Below are positions 1,167 through 32,000 of a stretch of 32,000 nt of DNA, piece after piece. This stretch comes from Zygophlyctis sp. KS116 (lineage: Eukaryota > Fungi > Chytridiomycota). Position 1 is the first letter of the stretch. Every line of letters begins with the position of its first letter. The notes under the pieces were generated by a model, which was not told the DNA's origin, made no database searches, and was given only the letters and a program-made list of their open reading frames with translations. Position numbers and translations under genes: made by a program. Where the stretch lies: the NCBI GenBank assembly GCA_054661495.1, contig BAAFSQ010000072.1:10643-42642 (forward strand), given 5' to 3'.

Positions 1167-4100
1167 ATGCAAGACTCTATCCAAGAAATCAATCTTATTA
1201 AAAAAGTTACAGACTCTATTATTCAAGAATTATGGGAGGCGTCAAGAGATAACGATCCAACAGCTTCGTTTGCTCTACCTATAGAGAAACCATGGACAGA
1301 CCCAGTAGAAAAAGTCAAAAAAGGCAATTTAAGATTCACTCTCAAAGACAAGTCTATCACTCTTAAATCAGCAGATGCGCCGATTACTCCAAAACTAGTA
1401 TCAACAAGAAAAATAAAGAATATTCAGAAAACTCATACTGGGTTTAGAGACAGACTCAAGTCTTCAGAGGAAAATCATCAGGCTCTAAAATTGAAATCTA
1501 AAGATGATACATACATGGAGAATTTGGTAAAGGATGATGAATATTACAATGAATTACAGAATTTTAGAAAAATGTATTGGAATGATTTAGTAGTAGATGA
1601 CTTGCTTGTATTGTATGTTTTAATATTTAAAAAATTAGATCTAGAAAGGATGAACAACCTTTGATAAAGAGTTTCAAAAGGCAGTCTCAAGCTATAAAAT
1701 CTACATCTCCAAAATTAGATAAAGATTATGTAACAAGTGGATTTTATAGGATTGATGATCGTTTATATCCAATGAAAACAAATGAAAAGAATGCAATGAA
1801 TTTTGGAATGGGAGAGGCTGATATTCCGCCAGTTAAAGTTTCAATTCCCTTTTCAAAGTTATCTAAAACATGCCGAGATTATGTACCGCATACTCGGCTT
1901 TCATACGACCCTACAGACTCTGTAAATATCGCAGATTATCTATTCAAAGGTAATGTACCGCATATAGGTACAAGAAGGAAAAAGCAATTTAAAGCCTTGG
2001 CATCAATCAAGGATTCTAAACCTGTTAAAAAGTAAATCATTCGTGTTATTTTCGGACATTGAGCCAACTTGAAAACTTCCGAATTAATCTATAATCATTT
2101 AAATATGAATGCATCACTAGAATCAAATGTATCAAAAGGACACTTTCCACCACTGTCAAGAGAAAAATCGTCGTCATCGTATAAACCAAGAGCGACTGAT
2201 CTTGAAAATCAACAAAATACCAACAAGATTACTTTAAATAATCAAGGGCTCGAAGAGACTCTTACTGGATTAGAAAATATTAAAGAAGGTTTCTAAAGAT
2301 GTTTAATTATAGGCCGTAGAAAATCAATTGTTGATTTTAATCTTAAGCCAAAAACGGGAGTTGACGGCGATCAAAGATTAGAGCCTCTACCTCCAATCCC
2401 TCAATTTAAGCCTATTGATAACACATTAAAGATTCCCCTAAATACGGATTCATCTGTTGCTGAATTTCGGACTTATCAAAAAAACATTATTCATCCAATC
2501 ATAAAATTAACAGCCAATGATAATATTATCTTTCAAGAATTTGAAGTTCTCTGCCATGAAATACTAAGTACTATGGGGGATTTGGAAGCGTCGCTAGAAG
2601 ATATGACGACTTGGAAAGATGATTTTTTGACTCAGTCGGTCCCATCAAACGTCAAGCTTCAGCTAGCAATTCTTTTTGCGAGAATGTTACGATGTAAATC
2701 AGACCTTCATGAGCCGATATTTGAAATTATTACACAAGTTAAACTCTACTCAAAGCCTTGGATAGAAAAAAGAAATGTGATCATGGAATTGGAAAAGGAA
2801 TATCAAAGGTAAATATACCAGTGCATTGATAAAATAGACATACAGCTGTTCTTGATGTAGCGATACGTAAATTAGAATTGATGCAAATTCAGGTATAGTT
2901 GTGAAAATATTGAAACCTAGGCCGATAATATTAAGAGTCAGCACAGAGCAGCATTATGGGAAAGACTCACTGCTCGATTATTTGTATGGTTGATTCAATA
3001 GACTAAAAATAGGATTATCTTCCTACAAGCGAAAACAAACAGAACGACATAGAGTAAGAATTTAGACCTAATTTCAACAGAATAAATAAGATTGGAGTCA
3101 ACAACCTTTTGATGCTTCCGGATATGATAAAAAAAGAGGGAAATACTCAAGATGAAATGTATGGCTCAGAAGATTCCTTAGATAGCGAAAACACAGAGAC
3201 TTCATTCATGTCTATTCGAGAATTTGCAGAATTAAAAAGTATTATAAGAAAAATACTAACTTAAAGGATTAATTAGAAACTATTTGATCGTAGACTCGCC
3301 TAAAGTCGCAAAGCTGAAATCACTTGTTCGTCGATTTGATTTACTGTCAAGAACGTTACATCATAAATATCGAGAAAGAATGGTACCACTTCTAAAAAGG
3401 CCGTTTCCTATACCTTTGAAGCCAAACTATGTATCCTTTCATATCGGAACTATCATTAATCAGAGACACAAGAAATTCCCTGTACCTACCTCATTCTCGC
3501 TGCTTGATCTTCGCAGTTTTAGTGGAGATAAAGAATCTGATGATGATGATTCATCTGAAATGTCCTCAGATGCAGATACTAAGCCAATTTTTAGCGAAGA
3601 TCGGGGTGTTCCTATCCATAAGAGCAATAGCTTCTATGCATTGTATTGTTTGGGCCGTAAGGCAGAACTAAGGAAGCCACTATTCAATAACAAGCTCAAT
3701 ACAAAAGATTCACAACGCCAGAGACGTGTCCTCTCGAAAAGAGAAAAAAGCGGCTGGAATGCCCTCTACAGTTCATCTGATGAATCAGAAACTGACAGAG
3801 ACGATGATTTATTATCAGAAACTGATTCAAATGAATTCTTAACGATGGATGATGTAAAATTAAAAATTAATCTTATTTATAGGAGCTGGATAATCTCAAG
3901 CCGGAAGACCTTCAAGATGCCATCAAATCCTTTTTTGCAAATCATCCAGAAATTCAGCCTCCTCAATTGTAAGAACTCCATAATTAATTAAAAAGAGAGA
4001 AAGACAGCTTGAATAATCAAAACATTATCCATAAACTTGATTCTAAAAAAGATGCATTTTCTCTTCAAGAAGTAGTAGAATTAACTCTTTTGCATGCTCA

Positions 4101-5068
4101 ACAAGTTCACGTACTCCAAAAATTCTATGAGTACTTATTTTTTTGAATTAAAACAAAGGAATAGATTAGATGAAAACGAAAACGAAAAAATGGAGCTAGA
4201 GGCTAAACATGCCCGTGAAGTAAATCAGCTGCAAAATCAAATACAGAATTCAGTTAAAATGCAAAGAGAAGAAGATAGACCGGAGCCACTGAAAAAACGT
4301 CTTTCTTTTGCTGCAACTCGATCAAATTCCATCTCTGCTGCTCATCCTTTTGCACAACCGATACTTGCAAGAGATAATTCAAATTCCCGAGTCAAAAAAC
4401 TAGAGAATGCACCTGAATCTCCTGATTTTAAATTATTAAAGGATTCAATTGCTATTGAGGAAGATTCTGCCTCTGTGAAAGATGCCGTTGAAGAAGCAGT
4501 TACTAAGAAGGAAAAGGTCCATAAGCCAAAAAAGATAAAAATCAAGCATAAAGTAATATTCTGACTTTATCTTATATTTAGAAGCAGAATTCGACACATC
4601 CCCCAATGCTTGGCTTAGGAAAGAATGAAATTAAGGAAGGCGTATATTTATTTTTACAACTAACACATAGTTTTTAGAGAGATTGAGAGATTTTACCGAA
4701 AAGGCATTAAAAAGGCGACAATTGAAAATGCAGAGTCAAATAGAAATTGAAAAAGCCGCAAACGAAGAAAGATTAAAGCACACTCTACTTATCAAAGAAA
4801 ATGATGATTTCGACGATGGAGGAGTTCTAGAAGCAGAATTTATGCCGACCCCGGGATCTTTCAAATATAGAGAGAGCTGGATTGGTAAAGGTACTTGTCA
4901 ATATATTTAATAAAATAGGCTTAATGGTGCCTTGGGGAGGTAGATTTAAAGCCAAACACCCGACAGAAAATAAGGTAACGTTTTGAATATTATTAACTTA
5001 AGAAAATCAATATTTTAAATCTCTTTGATGTATCAATTGCAATTCAAAAACAAAGTTCAGATAAGTAA
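1167..5068 (+). CDS. Uncharacterised multi-exon coiled-coil protein (possibly two genes split near 2035-2105)
   Basis: 14 canonical 24-29 nt GT-AG introns join the ORF fragments. From 2105 they give one open frame ending ...INILNLFDVSIAIQKQSSDK* at 5068. Helical blocks include LFARMLRCKSDLHEPIFEIITQVKLYSKPW and FSLQEVVELTLLHAQQVH. The junction at 2032-2105 cannot be bridged by a canonical short intron. Confidence 0.7.
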
Positions 5069-5076
5069 TACAAGAT

Positions 5077-8053
5077 TTATTTTTTCTTTTTGTCTTTATC
5101 TTTTGTAGCCTCTTCGACTGGACCAGACAACAGAGATCCCCGCTTTTTATTAAGAGGTGTCTTTTCATAAAAGTCCTAAAATATCACCGAATAAGTAAAT
5201 CACCTTGAATAAAGCTTCTTCTTCACCATCAGGGGGAGGCAATGAGATAATTTGATTAATAAATTCGATTGTTTCAAGTTTTTTGTTGAATCTATTGAGC
5301 TAAGTCATTAATCTATGAAACTTAATACATTTTTTAGCCTTCTTTCACTCAGAATTCGATCGCAAATCAATTTAATGATGCCCGAGGCAAGTCCTTCGCT
5401 CAATCGAGTAAGTGCGGTGAAATCTAGTGTGGCAGCTTGCTCGTGTGAAACTTTCTGAGAAATGAACTCTTGCCATAGAAGACGCCTAGATGCGTAATCT
5501 GGCTTTGGAACAAAAATCAGCTTATCGAAAATTGGCACTAAAGCTTTAACATCTGCTTCCCATGGTTTATAGCTTGTTCCGATGAATATCACTCGATCAC
5601 TTGGTGATAGACCCTTGAGACTTTTCAGTAGATCTTTTTTGATCCGTTTGGGGTCAGTCGTATCATCCTTAGGAACTTTTTTTGCGAAAACCATTTCTAT
5701 GTTATCAATGTATATGATAGCTGGACAATGAGCTCGGCCTACTTTAAACGCCATATGAACCATTTTTGTAACATTTGACTTTCCAACGTACTGCTCTGCT
5801 GTGTTTCGTGGTGTTAAATTAAATATCTGGGCCCCAGTCATTGTAGCGATTGCATTTACCAACATTGTCTTTCCAGAGCCTAATGATTACGTTAAAAGTA
5901 CTACCTCTTGGTCCAAAAAACAAAAAGGAGGTTGGTAATTTCATACTTTCTAAATTTTCAGGACTGAGCCCGAATGGTAATATGCATAATTCAGTGATTA
6001 ACTAAAATATTAAAAAACACCTGAAGAATATACCCTTTGAACTTCTCCGAGTGACGGATTGATGACAGGGAGTTTTTGTGTTGAAGTTCCCATAAAATCA
6101 AAATTACCCTTAAATTCGTCAATATTAATGCTTGAATGCTAGATATTATAGATGAAAACATACTTTTTGGAAAATCCCGGCCTTTATAAGTTCCTCTACC
6201 AATGATTCCATTGTTCTATTTGCAGTGATATCCTTCTCCTTTTTTCCCTTTTTTCCCTTTTCCTAAAAGATAAGAAGCGTAAATAGTTACTTTTTTTCCT
6301 TTTTTGCCTTTTCCTCCCTTTTTGCCTCCTAATAATTAAAAAAACTATCAGCTTACCTTTTCCTCCTTTTCCTTTTCCCTTATCTTTTTCTAAAGAAAGC
6401 TTTAAATTTTTAAGCTCATCCTTCAAGATTTCAAATACTTCATTTTTAATCTTTTGACTGTTATTGAAAAGCTAAATACCTCTGCTTCAACTTCTGCTCT
6501 TTTTGCAGTCTTGATTATTTCTTGGTCATGTGTCTGAGCAAAGTTGTCAGAGTCATCTTTAACTAGCCATTCATCATGATACGCCTTATTTCTACGATTA
6601 AATATTTATGATTTACTCTGTAGCTATCTTTTCCAAATATTTAGAATCATCATATTTGAACTGATTTTCACCTGAATCTCCCTATAATTAAGGAATTCTA
6701 TGCCAAACCTCATCTTTGCCTTTCTTTTCTTTACCCTTTTCTTTCACAGCTTCTATTGATCAATTCATCTCAAAATATACCTTTAGGTTCTGTTTTAGGA
6801 GCTACAGTCTCAACTACTTGTGCACCTTCCACTGGTGGAATAAATTGAAATCCTTGCTTTTGCCAAATTTCATCTTCTGGAAATTCTGGAAATTTCCCAT
6901 TTATTCTTTTATGCTCCATATACCATTGTCTAAACGAATCTTGTATTGCTTCTTTCATGTCTGGCCCCTCTATTTTCAAAATCCTTTTTGATTAATAAGT
7001 ATTGCATACTTTTCTTTTATATTGATCAATGCTTGTTGATAATCCTGTTCATATTGCTGCTGTAATACTTTCCTTCTGGCTCTGTTATTTTCCGCCCTTT
7101 TAATGGGATCATTTTTAAGTTCTTTGACGGGAAATTCCATATCTAGGATTAATTTTTATATACATACTTAAGAATAGATTCTCTTCATATCGCATTTTTT
7201 GAACCTTTTTCCTGTCTACATGCCCACGATAACTATTCCAATTTAATTGTAAGATAAATTACACTCTTTGAATATTTTTTGCAGCTTCTGTAACCTCTTT
7301 TTCATCAGCAGCAGTATCCATTTCTCTTTCTCTTTTAGCTTGAAGCCTAACGATTAATACAATGTAATAATATTACCGTATATCCGCCATATATTTTGCT
7401 CTCATCTTTCCTTGCCTTCCTCTTTCATTTAATTGAATTATTTTTATAGCTTCTTCCTGACTCATTATTGGAAAAATATCTAGATTTTCTCCAAATAGAA
7501 AATCTCTGGCACCCAACTCCTCCAATAACTTTTCTCTCTCTCCTATTGTTTTTTCTGCATCTTCTAATATAAATCTAGGGGCTGGAATTCGAATATCATC
7601 AGGAATTAATTTCATGTCCGAAAGTATATCATTATAAATATGCGCATCAGTGAATTCCAAATCAACAATACTCTAAAATCATTAGCATCTTTAGCCTCAT
7701 CATCTTGATCGGCTTGTAATCATTTAATAGATCATCATGATCATATGAAAATACTTACAGCTTTCACTTCAATCAGTCTCGCCATCACAGCTTCAAGTAC
7801 TCTCTTCAACAGTCTTCTCTTCTGGGGATGAATCGTTTGATCGTAACATTCTTCCAGCTTTCTAAAAATCCCAATATAGCGAATATATAGCACAGCCAAA
7901 TGTTGAAAAGCAGAATCTTTATCCTTTGGAACCAGTGGATCTTTGACACTTTCATACTGACATTGATCGGCTAATGCATGATAAGCAGAAGTCCAAGATT
8001 TGTTGAATGTTCTAAAATTATTATAATTAGCATAGCACTTACAGGTTCGACAT
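5077..8053 (-). CDS. IQCA1: IQ and AAA domain-containing protein (dynein regulatory complex subunit DRC11)
   Basis: N-terminus MSNL|TFNKSW; LYIRYIGIFRKLEECYDQTIHPQKR; IQ motif IQRVYRGH; Lys-rich linker; Walker A GPRGSGKT rebuilt across a 25-nt intron; AAA domain in ORF 5308..5865. 17 introns. Confidence 0.92.
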
Positions 8054-24934: not shown

Positions 24935-24967
24935 TTGATAAAAAGTGCCAAGGGTAGGGGTGTTAAA

Positions 24968-25561
24968 ATGATCAAGGCCGGAATCATTGTCAAGAGAATT
25001 CCTCAAATCACTAAAAATCTAGACAAATTATCACATTCTTATTACTTGCTGAAAAATGCCCAACAGGAAGATGCATCGAGACCCTTTGAAACTGAATTTT
25101 ATTTTAAAAAAGGATCGCTTGGAGAGTCAAAATGGAATTTGGAAAATTCTGGGAAAGTGGGATCACAAGTTAAACAACCGCTAGAAGAGTTGAAACTTGT
25201 CACAGATAGATCAGATCTTGAAAAATCAGATCAGTCATTGGATAGAAAATTAGAAAAAGATTTATTTTTAGTGCAACAATTCGAAAATTCTTGTTGGGAA
25301 TTTCCTTCTCAACAACTTTTAAAGGAAGAATTCTTGCATGAAACTTCAGATAGACTAATTAATTTAACTCTCGGAGAGGTTGATGTTTGGAGAGTGGGAC
25401 AAGCACCAATAGGGCATATAGATCAAACTTTCTTTATAAAGTATCATATTCTTCCTGGTTCTAATCCAAAAAGTGGGGCTTATGCTTGGTTAGATAAGGA
25501 TGAATGTAAAAGTAGAATGACTACAGAATATTATAGGGAAATACAAGATTTGATTAGTTAA
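24968..25561 (+). CDS. MRPL46: Mitochondrial ribosomal protein mL46 (yeast MRPL17-like)
   Basis: IKAGIIVKRIP, FYFKKGS, SLDRKLEKDLFLV, WEFPS, WRVGQAPIGH, YAWLDKDE. Intronless; first in-frame ATG at 24968. Confidence 0.88.
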   Translation: MIKAGIIVKRIPQITKNLDKLSHSYYLLKNAQQEDASRPFETEFYFKKGSLGESKWNLENSGKVGSQVKQPLEELKLVTDRSDLEKSDQSLDRKLEKDLFLVQQFENSCWEFPSQQLLKEEFLHETSDRLINLTLGEVDVWRVGQAPIGHIDQTFFIKYHILPGSNPKSGAYAWLDKDECKSRMTTEYYREIQDLIS

Positions 25562-27076
25562 CTTGTTTATTAGCCATTAAACTTTCTAAAAGTCCTAGTA
25601 TTTTCATCATGGATGTTATAGATTTGATTTCAACTTGTATTTTTTGAGATATCTTTAGAATTAGATCACATACTAGAGGTGATTGATGAACTACTACTGA
25701 ATACATGTCTAAAATAATATTAAAGAGCTTAATAAGTGTTTTAGAGTAGGCAGGAGTATTCATTTGTTTAAAAATGAAATTTAGTACGCTTAAAAGAGAA
25801 TCTTCATCCCTTCCACCTAATGCAGTTAATAAACCTTCACGATGTGCTAATTCTTTGATCATGCTCATGATGATTACTGGTGAATGATTCTAAGATTAAT
25901 TCAAAAAAGAAAAATTACCTTTTCTAAAACAGCGTCTAGTGCAGCTCTATACTGAAATGATTTTAAATATTTATCAAAAGGTGCTAGTCTTTTTCTTTTA
26001 GTAGACTGTATAGTTAAATCTTCTTCATGTCCTTTATAGTCTGCTCCTCTCTTAAAATGTGCAGGTGTACCACCTCTAATCTTTATGATCTTTTCTGTTT
26101 TTTGTTTTAATGGCATATTTTTAATAGATAATGTTCCATTTGAAGTTCCAATAACTAAACTTGAATCATTTTTATTCATTGCTAAAGACATTATTGGAGA
26201 AGAGTATTTAGCAGAGTAAAGTACTTTATAATCCACCAATGAATGTACTTTAAATGAATGATCCAAAGATCCACTTAATAAATGTGTTTTAGATCCATTT
26301 AGCTTAATGCAAGTTACAGTTTTAGAATGATTAATTAAACTTGTAACCAAATAACCACTTTTACCTCCACAAATATCAAATATACGTATTGCAGAACCAG
26401 CGGCAGCAGCCAAGAGTCCATTACCTGGTAATAATTGTAAAGATTCAACTGGAGCACCTACATTCCAAGTATGAACACTTTTATTCATTCTAGGATCCCA
26501 AACCTTTATAGTTTGATCATAAGACCCTGAAAATAAGAGATTTGATGAAATAGCTGCTGTTTTAATATAATCATCATGTTCCTCAAATACATTTATAGAA
26601 CTTTGGGAAGGAATATCCCAGTATGTAACAGTTTTATCACTAGAGGCAGACACTAGATGAGTTTTATCCTCCTTGAACCCAACGTAATTTACTGTCCCTG
26701 CATGCCCATTCAGTTGTCTTAGAATGGCTCTAGAATTTGCATCAAATATTTGAATTGAACCATTTTTCTCTCCAGTTGCAAGCAATGCACCATCAGATCT
26801 ATAATCTGCACACATGACATCACTCTTATTCCTAGAAATAGACTTTATAAGGTTTGCATCGGTTGCATAGATGCTTAATTTGTTTGCTGCAGCAATAAAA
26901 ATATTATTTTTCAATGGATGAAATTTTAAATCTGAAATTCCAAAGAATTCCTTGACAATGATTGGATTCTATCTATTATATAATGCAAAATGTACAGATA
27001 AGTGATCATAGATTGTAATTTCCTTTTTGTCAGTGGATTTCCATCCATAGACTGTATTCAACTTTTGATAACTCAT
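25554..27076 (-). CDS. UTP15: U3 snoRNP-associated WD40 protein Utp15
   Basis: YRSDGALL, IFDANSRAILRQL, HDDYIK, NHSKTVT, and C-terminal ELAHREGLLTALGGRDE. ATG at 27076 (MSYQKL); introns at 26969..26995 and near 25890..25918. Confidence 0.95.
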
Positions 27077-27138: not shown

Positions 27139-27234
27139 GATGCCATATGTGGTTCAGTAGGTTGGACCATAGGTGATGCCATAGGTTGGACCATAGGTGG
27201 TTCAGTAGGTGATGCCATAGGTTGGACCACAAGG
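27139..27234. repeat. Tandem 12-bp minisatellite, 8 units of three variants
   Basis: Units A=GATGCCATAGGT, B=GGTTCAGTAGGT, C=TGGACCATAGGT in the order A' B C A C B A C'. Confidence 0.9.
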
Positions 27235-27281: not shown

Positions 27282-28614
27282 ATGAGTCGATTGGTGATTT
27301 GTGGTTCAACAGACTGGGATGTGATTGGACGGAAAAAGAGCGGCACAGACTATCCTACGCCAGTAGTATATGCGCAGTCTAGTGAAATTAATCTGAAATA
27401 TGCAATAAGTTCAAATTCTTCTGTTCATAGCGTGTTGATTGACGGTAATCAGATTCTACTCACAAAGTAGAGGATGGGTGTGCTTACACGTTTGGGAGAA
27501 ATGAAAAGGGACAGCTAGGACATTCTAATGCTTCAACTAGCGATTTGTATAAAGTTGAATTAGAGGAAAAGGTAGTCCATGCTGCAACTGGAAGAGGTCA
27601 TTCACTGTTAGTCACTGAATCAGGAGATGTTTACGCGGCTGGAGATAATAAATCTTATCAATGTGGATATTCAAAAGATGTGTCTGGGTTTTCAAAGGTT
27701 GATATTAGTGAACACATTATAAAAGTTGCTGCAGGAATTGATTTTTCTTTGGGTTTGACAAAGGATGGTAAAGTTTGGTCTTGGGGGAATCCTCAATATG
27801 GTCAGTTGGGTCATGGAAGTGATCAACAATATATTGGGAAAGGAAATAAGGTTGTTTTTGAGCCTCAATTGCCCAAATTGATTGCAAAATTGGATGATAA
27901 GAAGATAATGGATATTCAATGTGGCTCAAATCATAGTTTGGTTGTGGATAATACTGGTTCTATTTATATTTGGGGATGTGCAGGGTAAATTAGAATTGGT
28001 TTACATTAGTTATGGTCGGTTAGGATTAAATGAGACACCACCAAGAGATGTAATGGTTCCTACAGAAGTTCCTGGGTTTAAAAATCGTAATAATTATGTT
28101 AAAAAGATTGCTTGTGGTCCTACATGCTGTATGGTGACGGATTCAAGAGATGCTCTCTTTGTTTGGGGCAAATGGAAGAATTCTGGGGATGGAGGTCAAG
28201 GAACACCATGGTTATATCCACGATATTTTGATGGTTTATCTGGATGGAAAATAGATGATATTGCTTGTGGTGGTGTCTCTTTGTTTGTAATTTCTGAGAA
28301 ATCTACCATTAGTTGGGGTACTGTTTGAAATATTTGAAACAATAGGTCAAGGTGCTAGTAATGGAGAACTTGGTCATGGAGAGGGAAAACCTCGTTCTGC
28401 TACTAATGCTGTTAAAGTTGATGCTCTTGAAGGAGTGCATGCTAATTCAGTCTCTTGTGGATTGGGAACCACTTTAGTACTGATTGATGCTTCAGATCCT
28501 CTCTTATCTTCGCTAGGACAGTCTGAAGGCTCCCCAACAGTTATCACTTCTTCGCCCAAAAAGAGAAAGTCTGTAAAAGCTGATACAGAAAAAGCCAATA
28601 AAAAGAAAAAATAA
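27282..28614 (+). CDS. RCC2: RCC1-repeat protein, RCC2/TD-60-like
   Basis: N-terminal LVICGSTDWDVIGRK, WGNPQYGQLGHGSD, YGRLG, DGLSGWKI, GELGHG..KPRSA; C-terminal NLS-like PKKRK...KKKK. Three introns of 25-28 nt. Confidence 0.82.
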
Positions 28615-28615
28615 T

Positions 28616-29077
28616 CTATTGATCTGGATTTGATGGCTCGTAGCCTCTTCGAGCATTATATTCTTGAATCTTCTTCTTGATTGCTTTTCCACTTCCCCTT
28701 CCCATACCAGCCTGAGGAGGTAATTCCATTGCACCATCCTTGTTTGGACAAGGAGGATGAGGAAACACAAAATCCTGATCCATTGTGATGATGGCTTTCT
28801 TGAAATCTGGGCGTTTAAATGCTCGTCCTCCCATTTTCATTTTTATTTTCCCCAAGTAATTCATTGTGCGAACATTGGTTATAGTAATATTGTATAATTT
28901 TGAAAGATAGTCCTGAATATCCACCTTTGAAAGCTGAGGTGGCACCTTGAAAACCGCTTGATGAGGGGGGAACTGAGGAGATCGAACTAGTCTGAATATT
29001 ATATTCGGAAAGTAAAGTTTAGATCCAGCTTAATATCAATTTTATTATTAAAAAATACCAGGCAATGGAAATGGCAT
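28616..29077 (-). CDS. MRP20: Mitochondrial ribosomal protein uL23m
   Basis: MPFPLP|AGSKLYFPNIIFRLVR...AVFKVPPQLSKVDIQDYLSKLYNI...VRTMNYLGK...KKAII....DFVFP. 30-nt intron at 29029..29058. Confidence 0.9.
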
Positions 29078-32000
29078 TTAGCGAATAGATGAAACCTCGG
29101 ATTGGACGGTTCTATTTTTTTAAAAAAAAGGATAATTTTACCGATGGATGGCGCACAAAAAGTCTACATAAGACAAATTATCCACAGTCTTGTCTTCAAT
29201 TAAAAATGAGTTCATTTCCTTTTCTAAGAGGATATCCATTCCTTGGCGTATAATTTGCAGGTGAAGATATCGACGACGCTCAGATCGGACTTGGGAAATG
29301 AGAGACACAACTCTTTTAGAAGTATCAGAGTCTCTTTCAGCTATAATATGCTAACTTTAACTTAATTATCCCTACCTGATGTATATCGACTTCATCTAAA
29401 CTGTTTACTCCAAAAACGTCCTCTAAAAATGACGAACTTATTCCACGACTGATCCAGAGGATCATCTGCTGTCCATTTTCTAAAATGTATGCTCCAGACT
29501 GATCCAATCTTTCGCATGAGACTCTAACAAAAGGAGGGTATTGAATTTGATTGTATTCATTGAGATCTCCATACTAGAATTAATAGATATAACTTACAGG
29601 GGCTTCAAGATTATGAATTGGAAACATCCGCGGGTAGAAAAATGGTACTGTTTCAGCGACTCCCATGTTGTATAGAGATCTCATATGGAAAACTCTTTGG
29701 TCAGAGTTGATGTATGCGCCACCACGAAAAACTTTGGCTTTTAAAAGTGAAAGCGTATAAACTGGGTAAAGCTTAAAAGATTCAGGCAATACAAGCTACG
29801 ATTAATTAATTAAATCGATACCTGACCAGCTGCAGTAACAGAAGCACAGTTCAGACGGTAAGACGACAGAACCTTCACACAAGACGCCTCAAATTTTTCT
29901 CGAATCTGTTTTAAGGGGATAGAGGACATCATGGATATCGACATTTTTGATGTGTAATTAATTACAGTATCAAGATCTGCGCTTTTGAAAACTGAGCTAA
30001 GACTGTTAGTGTGTCCTATCGCCAAATTATGAATTCTAATGCGACGCTGCCCCTCTGATGTAGTATAGAGTAAAGCAGCTTGTATATATGAATCACCTCG
30101 CTCTTCCAGCTTCGAATCGTGTGCTAAACATACACCAAATGATTTGAGAGAGTCAATACCAGCCAGCTCAAGATCAGTAGAGTTTCGCATATAGAAGTTT
30201 CCAAAATGATCTTCTATTTTCAACCCTGTGTAATAAAAATTCAAAATAAATACCATTCGAAGCACGAAGACGTAGAAGTGCATCAAAGCCAAATGATCTT
30301 GATAGCAAGTACTTCAAATCGTTACCAAATTTCATTCCATCCCTAGTTGCATCAAAACTGGGATATAAGAAAATGTCACCGCCAGATAAAGCTGAAACGC
30401 ACCCTGAATATTACGATTTTTAATCAAATACCTATTGTGGCGACATCTACATATGTACTGGGAAATAGAAACATATCGACACATACACCACTAGATGCAC
30501 AATCCTGGCCTAACTTTCTCCAGTAAAACTCTTGAGGCTCATAAAGAGACTTTTCTTGGTCAGTGCCCAAGATTTTCATTTCTTCTCTATTTTTCAAGGC
30601 GCCCGGTCCATAAGAGGGCAAAACCGTCTGAAATACAATCAATTTACCTCCAAAAGATTTCTAAAACGTTTTAAACAATTAATTTAAATACCAGTGCTTC
30701 AAAGCCGGCAGTCAAAGCAGGACCTAAGGCAGGTTCAGTTAATCGATTTGAACCAAAAATTACTGGGATAGTGTCTAATAATGATATTATCACCTCCCTA
30801 CCGTCACTAATAGTATTCATACCTTGACTGTTCTGGGTCTACTAGAAATCCTGATTGTAATGGCATAAATGATTCGGATATATCGGAAAGAACCATCATT
30901 TGTGGTTGATCTAGCGCCGCCTTCAATATCAAGGATTAATTATCTTACGGAAAGATTATAAAAATGAATATCCTTATCAAAAGTCATGATTGCGACCTTG
31001 GCACCATCTGGCAATTTCTGATGACCAGAAAACAAAAAATCTTTTATGGTGTATAGTGCGGTCAAAAGAAGGCCGCTTTGAATTGAATGCCAGGATACAT
31101 CTATAGCGAATACATAAGAAACTGGCAATGCGGGGCGTGCCATAAATTCCTAAAAATTATTGAACGATCGAAAACCTTTGTAGCAATAAATTCTACAGAA
31201 CCTCTACATAATTCAGGTCTTTGCTGAGCATCTACACGTCTTCCATTCATGTCTAAATTTGCAAAATATTCAGTTGGCACCGTATTTTCAAAAGTGCAAA
31301 TATTACAAACAAACTTTCTTCCTCCATCAGTGAATAAAAAATATGGATTGATATACGCTTTACATCTATCACAGCGAATTGGCCCATTTTCACCAAAATC
31401 AACAACTTGAATAGGAGTTTCACGAGGATCCAATTCTGCTAAAGGCTGTAATATGAGTCCTAAAGGAAATCCAGCGGACTTCATCAAATCGTCCGTGATC
31501 GGTAAGCTATTTGTAGTCGCTCTCATAAATCGAGGATTACAATTGCCTACATCGTTATAAGCTGAAAATTTAGTTGTACCTTCATCATACGCAACAAATT
31601 GTGTAGATGCCATTGGCGGAGAAGTCCTTGAAGAAGTAATATAAGGAGTCGATAAGTATGTTTCTTGATCTGCCAGCTGGACAGCTAATGGGCTTGGAAT
31701 TTGATCCGGATGGATTTTATAACGGCCTTGCTGTTGCTGTGCCCCTGCAGGGACTCCAGGAGCCATTTTATCTACACCATTGAAACGCTGCTGGTTCATT
31801 CCAGGCTGTTCTTGTTGTGGGTATCCTTGCTGTCCTTGTTGTGGGTATCCTTGCTGTCCTTGTTGTGGGTATCCTTGCTGTCCTTGTTGTGGATATACCT
31901 GCTGCCCTTGCTGAGGATAACCTTGCTGTGCCTGCTGTGAATATGCCTGCTGAGGATAGCCTTGCTGTGCCTGTTGTGGATAGCCTTGCTGTGCCTGTTG
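29078..32000 (-). CDS. SEC24: COPII coat subunit Sec24 (SEC24C/D / Sfb3-like), 5' end outside window
   Basis: Zinc finger PIRCDRCKAYINP...CNIC, RPELCRGSVEF, FAIDVS, QAALLYTTSEGQRRIRIHNL, LPESFKLYP, LIEDK...SYVDFLCAIHR. 11 introns of 24-33 nt in the window. Confidence 0.95.
31810..32000 (-). repeat. Coding 24-bp tandem repeat encoding QQ(G/A)QQGYP
   Basis: TTGTTGTGGGTATCCTTGCTGTCC occurs three times near-identically on +, flanked by degenerate copies; in frame with SEC24. Confidence 0.9.

Follow-up and report, generated by a model that had tools for sequence, protein, structure and literature searches.

The SEC24 and uL23m coding regions touch without a spacer in the compact genome of the chytrid Zygophlyctis sp. 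KS116

In this work we analysed a 32,000-nt stretch of the genome of the chytrid fungus Zygophlyctis sp. KS116 (GenBank assembly GCA_054661495.1, contig BAAFSQ010000072.1, positions 10,643 to 42,642; hereafter the window, whose coordinates are used throughout), in which two neighbouring genes of the minus strand have coding regions that touch. The upstream gene, SEC24, encodes a Sec24C/D-like subunit of the COPII coat, and the downstream gene is uL23m, which we take to encode the mitochondrial ribosomal protein L23 of the yeast Mrp20 type. Once its terminal 30-nt intron is removed, SEC24 ends ...FLCAIHRTVQSEVSSIR-TAA, and the uL23m ATG (29077..29075) begins at the next base, with 0 nt between them and in the same frame. 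The initial annotation of the window had proposed this TAAATG join and had read it as a sign of operon-like or coupled expression; the join itself was borne out both in the sequence and in related organisms. The comparisons described below show that both gene models are right. The reading of the sequence that we favour, at a probability of roughly 60%, is that SEC24 and uL23m are two ordinary, separate nuclear genes with touching coding regions, that each would have an mRNA of its own and that the two mRNAs overlap; operon-like coupling appears to be the less likely reading.

The end of the SEC24 coding region and the start of that of uL23m together form a 53-nt island between two 30-nt introns. 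The SEC24 coding region, as seen from 31799 to 29078, is interrupted by about 10-11 tiny introns. Its penultimate exon (29350..29142) encodes ...ERDSDTSKRVV...SYVDFLCAIH plus CG and closes with ...TTG TGC GCC ATC CAT CG at 29142. The terminal intron that follows (29141..29112) is a phase 2 intron of 30 nt, GTAAAA...ATAG (GTAAAATTATCCTTTTTTTTAAAAAAATAG), with a T8A7 tract at 29129..29115, and the last exon (29111..29078, 34 nt) encodes (R)TVQSEVSSIR and the stop codon TAA at 29080..29078. Exon 1 of uL23m (29077..29059, 19 nt) reads ATG CCA TTT CCA TTG CCT G, that is, MPFPLP plus the first base of an alanine codon; it is followed by the first intron (29058..29029, 30 nt), GT...AAG with an AATAAA at 29046..29041, and by exon 2 (29028..28616), which ends in the stop codon TAG (28618..28616). 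As the annotation had also stated, retention of the SEC24 terminal intron would stop the protein at the donor, where the frame does read CAT CGG TAA.

Evidence that both introns are removed comes from L003, a Logan assembly contig of 2,263 nt (run ERR11260134) from a sister species, with about 77% identity to the window. Of the window introns, it spans seven and has none: SEC24 accounts for three (among them the one upstream of the penultimate exon, 29375..29351), uL23m for one, and the convergent RCC1-like gene of the opposite strand for the other three; the DNA contigs L008 and L007, equally distant, retain introns. Any two of the four lineages share 73-78% identity, and a tree gave no clear branching order among them. 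Since an RNA origin is far more probable than the disappearance of seven introns from a single one of the four sister lineages, L003 is evidently a transcript assembly, its RNA origin being read from the intron pattern. Across the join it reads ...YLCAIHRTVQSEVSSVR TGA ATG CCT TTC CCA TTA CCT GCT GGA TCT AAA..., which is translated as HRTVQSEVSSVR-TGA-ATG-MPFPLPAGSK in one continuous sequence. The equivalent of the intron at 29141..29112, which the annotation had predicted to be spliced, is exactly gone; given the RNA origin assigned to L003, the contig shows that in the sister species both 30-nt introns are spliced at the RNA level exactly as predicted. Moreover, L003 runs without a break over the 3' end of SEC24, uL23m and the antisense RCC1-like gene, each in spliced form. 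As a product of assembly at k=31, this continuity represents RNA over every 31-mer across the join, and it is compatible with one or with several molecules, because overlapping transcripts would assemble alike.

The identity of SEC24 was established by domain searches run exon by exon, with the naturally spliced L003 used in place of a joined model. Exons of the window contain the zinc finger (PF04810), beta-sandwich (PF08033) and helical (PF04815) domains, and the C-terminal Gelsolin domain (PF00626) was found on an exon of the L008 orthologue, so that the four domains follow one another in the order expected of a Sec24. The greedy exon chainer that produced the rough SEC24 exon chain over-calls introns downstream of 29351, and the introns trusted are those confirmed by L003 or consistent with L008. 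The penultimate exon aligns with residues 697-758 of human Sec24C; since this alignment ends at residue 758 of 766, SEC24 would be 8 residues short without the terminal splice. The C-terminal helix to which the annotation had drawn attention, after the FLCxxH motif, is present in the spliced form: the tail of L003 (HRTVQS) aligns with HKEIRQ of human Sec24C and reaches residue 763 of 766. At its other end, the 5' part of SEC24 runs into repeats that code for Q, G, Y and P, and the true start must lie beyond view, because contig C72, which carries the window, stops at the window end. The stretch 31805-32000 consists of 24-nt tandem repeats (5-6 copies, 87-89% matches) whose minus strand would encode a Q/G/Y/P-rich N-terminal region of SEC24. 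A SEC24 paralogue is found on the same contig (L072 3950-4600; C72 about 4950-5600); it ends ...SYHQFISLLRDSVGKISV-TAA, has no terminal intron, and is separated from the next ATG by an A/T-rich spacer of 34 nt.

The spliced uL23m product has 143 aa and the N-terminus MPFPLPAGSKLYFPN. It matches Ribosomal_L23 (PF00276) with an E-value of 1.1e-16 and 61.4 bits, against a cut-off of 30.8, and its closest solved structures are the mitoribosomal uL23m of yeast (5mrc_P and 3j6b_P) and Neurospora (6ywe_P), all aligned from residue 1. By these structure matches it resembles mitoribosomal uL23 more than the cytosolic or bacterial forms, also in the N-terminal extension xKxYFPNxxFxLxR. A second L23 locus is present elsewhere in the genome. 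A word search retrieved the protein P0001 of a sister species, with the same length of 143 aa and the same N-terminus, and also P0009 of Quaeritorhiza haematococci (MPFSLPAASKFFFPN) and P0007 (MPIPPLSLGSKLYFPN), whose N-termini both match the spliced model. In Quaeritorhiza, too, the coding sequence is interrupted after 19 nt, by an intron of about 128 nt and of identical phase; thus the uL23m intron is old and was not created for the junction. Its AAG acceptor (29029-29031) is kept in L008 (about 1307-1309) and in L007 (about 21-23). AAG likewise closes other introns of L008 and one predicted SEC24 intron of the window (30948..30921), and acceptors other than YAG seem to be common in the clade. 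A search of metagenome contigs for related loci returned only distant L23 genes, with 31-53% identity, and no further close members of the clade.

The window, L008 and L003 represent three lineages that preserve the join. In L008, a DNA contig from another sister, it reads CAT AG|GTAACTTGAACCCTTAAAAAATAG|A ACG GTC ... CGC TAA ATG CCT TTT CCA TTG CCC G|GTATGTTTGAATAATAAATTGACCATAAG|CT GGA, with both introns, the AAG acceptor and TAAATG all preserved; the SEC24 terminal intron has 24 nt there and lies at the same site. The SEC24 stop codon is TAA in the window and in L008 and TGA in L003, so that the join reads TAAATG, TAAATG and TGAATG, respectively. Two further contigs do not add lineages to this count: L006 is the species of the window itself, at 99% identity, and L071 (P0006) is too short to include the join. 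In the 34-nt SEC24 exon, the differences among the three lineages are synonymous or conservative (I/L/V), and the 19-nt exon of uL23m shows third-position changes only across four lineages; therefore each stretch is selected in its own frame. The island is a local peak of conservation, at 0.93 and 0.85 against about 0.78. In more distant relatives, namely L004 (53% amino acid identity) and Quaeritorhiza, uL23m and UTP15 are divergent, with about 160 nt between them, and SEC24 does not lie next to uL23m on the upstream side. Since uL23m stands head-to-head with UTP15 in both, comparison of gene order shows the join to be, on the sequence evidence, derived within the subclade of the window, and the spacer of about 160 nt indicates that uL23m ancestrally had a promoter of its own.

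The tightness of the join is in keeping with its surroundings. The genome is chytrid-like, with 12.7 Mb and introns of about 24-30 nt, and within the window minimal spacers occur whatever the orientation of the genes: 0 nt in tandem at SEC24/uL23m, 1 nt and -8 nt at two convergent pairs, and a tandem TGATG. The 1-nt case is that of uL23m itself, whose stop codon (28616) faces that of the RCC1-like gene (28614). The latter gene lies on the plus strand at 27282..28614, with its stop codon at 28612..28614, and corresponds in L003 to an open frame of 416 aa that lacks the three introns of the window. The 40-nt bin at 28581-28620, which contains the 3' ends of uL23m and the RCC1-like gene, is the most conserved of the region, at 0.85-0.94 against three relatives. 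Further along, mL46 (plus strand, PF11788) and UTP15 (minus strand, PF09384) are convergent and their coding ends share 8 nt (25554..25561), so that both tight convergent junctions fall within 4 kb of the SEC24/uL23m join. The annotation had counted the SEC24/uL23m join as the second zero-gap head-to-tail junction in 32 kb, and the first is indeed as described: at 455-470 mtIF3 ends TCT TGA, and the A of this stop codon is the first base of the ATG of a hydrophobic, signal-peptide-like ORF (open reading frame; MIIFVILINAATLL...). A zero gap is thus the tight end of a range of small spacers and not a statistical outlier here. Since tightness between convergent genes cannot serve translational coupling, a general loss of spacers is the economical cause. 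The only sizeable spacer nearby has about 205 nt, from the inferred ATG of UTP15 near 27076 to that of the RCC1-like gene at 27282, and it is filled by about three copies of a 24-nt tandem repeat (27143-27222).

Three genes of mitochondrial translation lie within the 32 kb, mtIF3 (463-1005), mL46 (24935-25561) and uL23m (28616-29077), and the annotation had linked the tight junctions to this function. The link looks like coincidence or the trace of an old neighbourhood, as mL46, UTP15 and uL23m are also adjacent in L004. There, positions 2942-6432 hold mL46, UTP15, uL23m and the RCC1-like gene as neighbours, with a SEC24 gene about 3.5 kb off. The group of mL46, UTP15, uL23m and RCC1-like is an old neighbourhood that has since been rearranged, and not a new cluster.

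How two genes without a spacer might be expressed separately can be outlined as follows. The coding regions would have come to touch through the near-total loss of spacers in the genome. As there is no spacer, the 3' untranslated region and the cleavage site of SEC24 must fall inside uL23m and, unless the RNA is bicistronic, the start site of uL23m must fall inside SEC24. The SEC24 mRNA would therefore run into uL23m before it is cleaved, and a candidate for its poly(A) signal is the AATAAA of the uL23m first intron, which follows the SEC24 stop codon after about 30 nt. This intron is the best conserved of six in comparison with L008, at 0.80 against 0.46-0.73 (exons, 0.78), with a conserved core AATAAT(A)AAATTGA, and AATAAA is present in L007 too; part of the conservation may reflect a branch site instead. 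The uL23m mRNA, in turn, would begin within the 3' end of SEC24, either in the terminal intron, which is rich in A and T, or in the last exons. The two 30-nt introns are the only non-coding DNA near the join. Some 90 nt upstream of the uL23m ATG are free of any ATG, and the SEC24 terminal intron with its T8A7 tract lies 35-64 nt upstream of that codon, so a uL23m start site in the ATG-free stretch near this intron is plausible, although we make no claim for it. A scan for bacterial promoters and terminators was given no weight, being irrelevant to the SEC24/uL23m locus.

Several observations weigh against separate, overlapping mRNAs. The promoter and the poly(A) signal placed in introns are short A/T-rich motifs in an A/T-rich genome, and AATAAA was not found after the stop codons of uL23m or of the RCC1-like gene. 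A T-run/A-run was considered as a general promoter motif and rejected, as its 8 occurrences in 32 kb have no consistent relation to gene starts. The raised conservation of the island is not significant when about 45 bins are allowed for. Finally, a bicistronic mRNA would likewise produce a contig that is continuous across the join, as L003 is, and in fungi ribosomes have been shown to reinitiate past a full-length ORF, with a 9-bp spacer, in a study that also describes a natural bicistron in Glarea (PMC10352335).

These last points bear on an arrangement in which one SEC24-uL23m mRNA makes both proteins, the ribosome ending at UAA (UGA in the sister species) and reinitiating at the adjoining AUG, so that synthesis of uL23m would be coupled to translation of SEC24. 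Such an arrangement would suit a zero-gap join kept in three lineages despite a change of stop codon, a local peak of conservation at the join, and an RNA-derived contig that is continuous and spliced over both genes. Nevertheless, contig continuity at k=31 is no proof of one molecule, and the ribosome would have to reinitiate after an upstream ORF of well over 900 codons. Inspection of the last 90 nt in the window and in L003 revealed no UGGGA-type motif complementary to 18S, the spliced RNA of the sister species has no significant structure across the join (fold z -0.51), and the AUG has a T at position -3. In yeast, the control with no spacer yielded no downstream protein (PMC10352335). Convergent junctions, which could not be coupled, are equally tight, and the ancestral uL23m had its own promoter. 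Taking all this together, we regard translational coupling on a bicistronic mRNA as unlikely, and a little more unlikely still the fuller proposal of a natural, conserved bicistron, with one spliced nuclear mRNA and spacerless reinitiation behind an ORF that exceeds 900 codons, possibly as one of many in the genome. A trans-spliced operon of the nematode or tunicate type finds no counterpart here, as there is no intercistronic region (a spliced-leader gene was not searched for); moreover, the uL23m ATG lies upstream of the only nearby acceptor, and no ATG occurs between the in-frame stop of the intron and the conserved N-terminus. Among the alternatives, we would leave most room, although we still consider it improbable, for a SEC24 transcript that reads through the whole of uL23m to a shared terminator, with uL23m protein coming exclusively from a second, shorter mRNA that has its own start. 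Multigene transcripts of microsporidia (PMC2742732) and polycistronic transcripts of basidiomycetes (PMC4503453) offer precedents, and the continuity of L003 over SEC24, uL23m and the antisense RCC1-like gene is in keeping with it, but early cleavage is favoured by the conserved AATAAA, which follows the SEC24 stop codon after about 30 nt.

Two other explanations concern the introns and the gene models themselves. Retention of the SEC24 terminal intron could act as a switch, making Sec24 10 residues shorter and altering uL23m expression through the resulting 60-nt spacer. When tiny introns are alternatively spliced, it is usually by retention, and in the window as in L008 the GTAA donor brings a stop codon into frame. 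This in-frame TAA, however, follows automatically from a phase 2 GTAA donor, the assembled RNA form of the sister species is the spliced one, and the last exon of SEC24 evolves as coding sequence, which makes a switch of this kind very improbable. The possibility that the abutment is an artefact of annotation, with the micro-intron unspliced or the uL23m start elsewhere, could be entertained while the model came from sequence alone and the uL23m intron had an unusual AAG end. It is now essentially refuted, since both splices appear in L003 at the exact positions, L008 and L007 share the AAG acceptor, the uL23m N-terminus is conserved as far as Quaeritorhiza with the intron in the same place, and the Sec24 tail aligns with human Sec24C.

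The junction alone is one more gene abutment and not a discovery. Its interest is that of a clean test case: a coding island of 53 nt that belongs to two essential genes and has a 30-nt intron on either side, in a join that at least three uncultured lineages have retained and whose ancestral, normally spaced state is known. If it is true that the promoter and the poly(A) signal of a gene can sit in tiny introns of its neighbour, this would explain how an intron-rich eukaryote could lose intergenic DNA totally. If, instead, one mRNA makes both proteins, the locus would be a rare natural bicistron of a eukaryote.

Among known systems, one comparison is with the viral joins at UAAUG or AUGA, as in caliciviruses, influenza B segment 7 and victoriviruses, in which termination-reinitiation needs an upstream motif complementary to 18S or a pseudoknot. 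As in these, stop and start abut at the SEC24/uL23m join; unlike in these, neither motif nor structure is seen. Among fungi, the comparison is with the natural bicistron of Glarea lozoyensis (IGG1) and the engineered 9-bp IGG6, studied in yeasts and filamentous fungi (PMC10352335). There too, full-length ORFs stand head to tail with a very short distance from stop to start. However, those systems need a short spacer, and in yeast a second ORF placed directly after the stop codon gave no downstream protein while the 9-bp spacer allowed reinitiation (PMC10352335); for the present locus, a single SEC24-uL23m molecule and coupling would both be hypothetical. The polycistronic transcripts of Agaricomycetes, known at the RNA level and without established translation (PMC4503453), and the green algal loci, with small upstream ORFs and most likely leaky scanning (PMC7896298), are comparable as nuclear, spliced and polyadenylated RNAs over at least two conserved ORFs. 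Leaky scanning of the green algal type is ruled out here, as it is impossible past a SEC24 ORF of more than 900 codons (>2.7 kb).

The closest match is found in the microsporidia (Encephalitozoon, Antonospora) and the nucleomorphs, in which spacers are near absent in every orientation, RNAs carry sequence of neighbouring genes, and the signals for start and end must sit within those neighbours. In microsporidia, mRNAs commonly span more than one gene, often in antisense, and only one of these is apparently translated (PMC2742732). RNA carrying more than one gene, an antisense neighbour included, is likewise seen in L003 of the sister species. Unlike microsporidia, which have almost no introns, the genome studied here is intron-rich, with about ten tiny introns in SEC24 alone; moreover, the coding regions of SEC24 and uL23m actually touch, and the two 30-nt introns that flank the join may be where each gene holds the signals of its neighbour.

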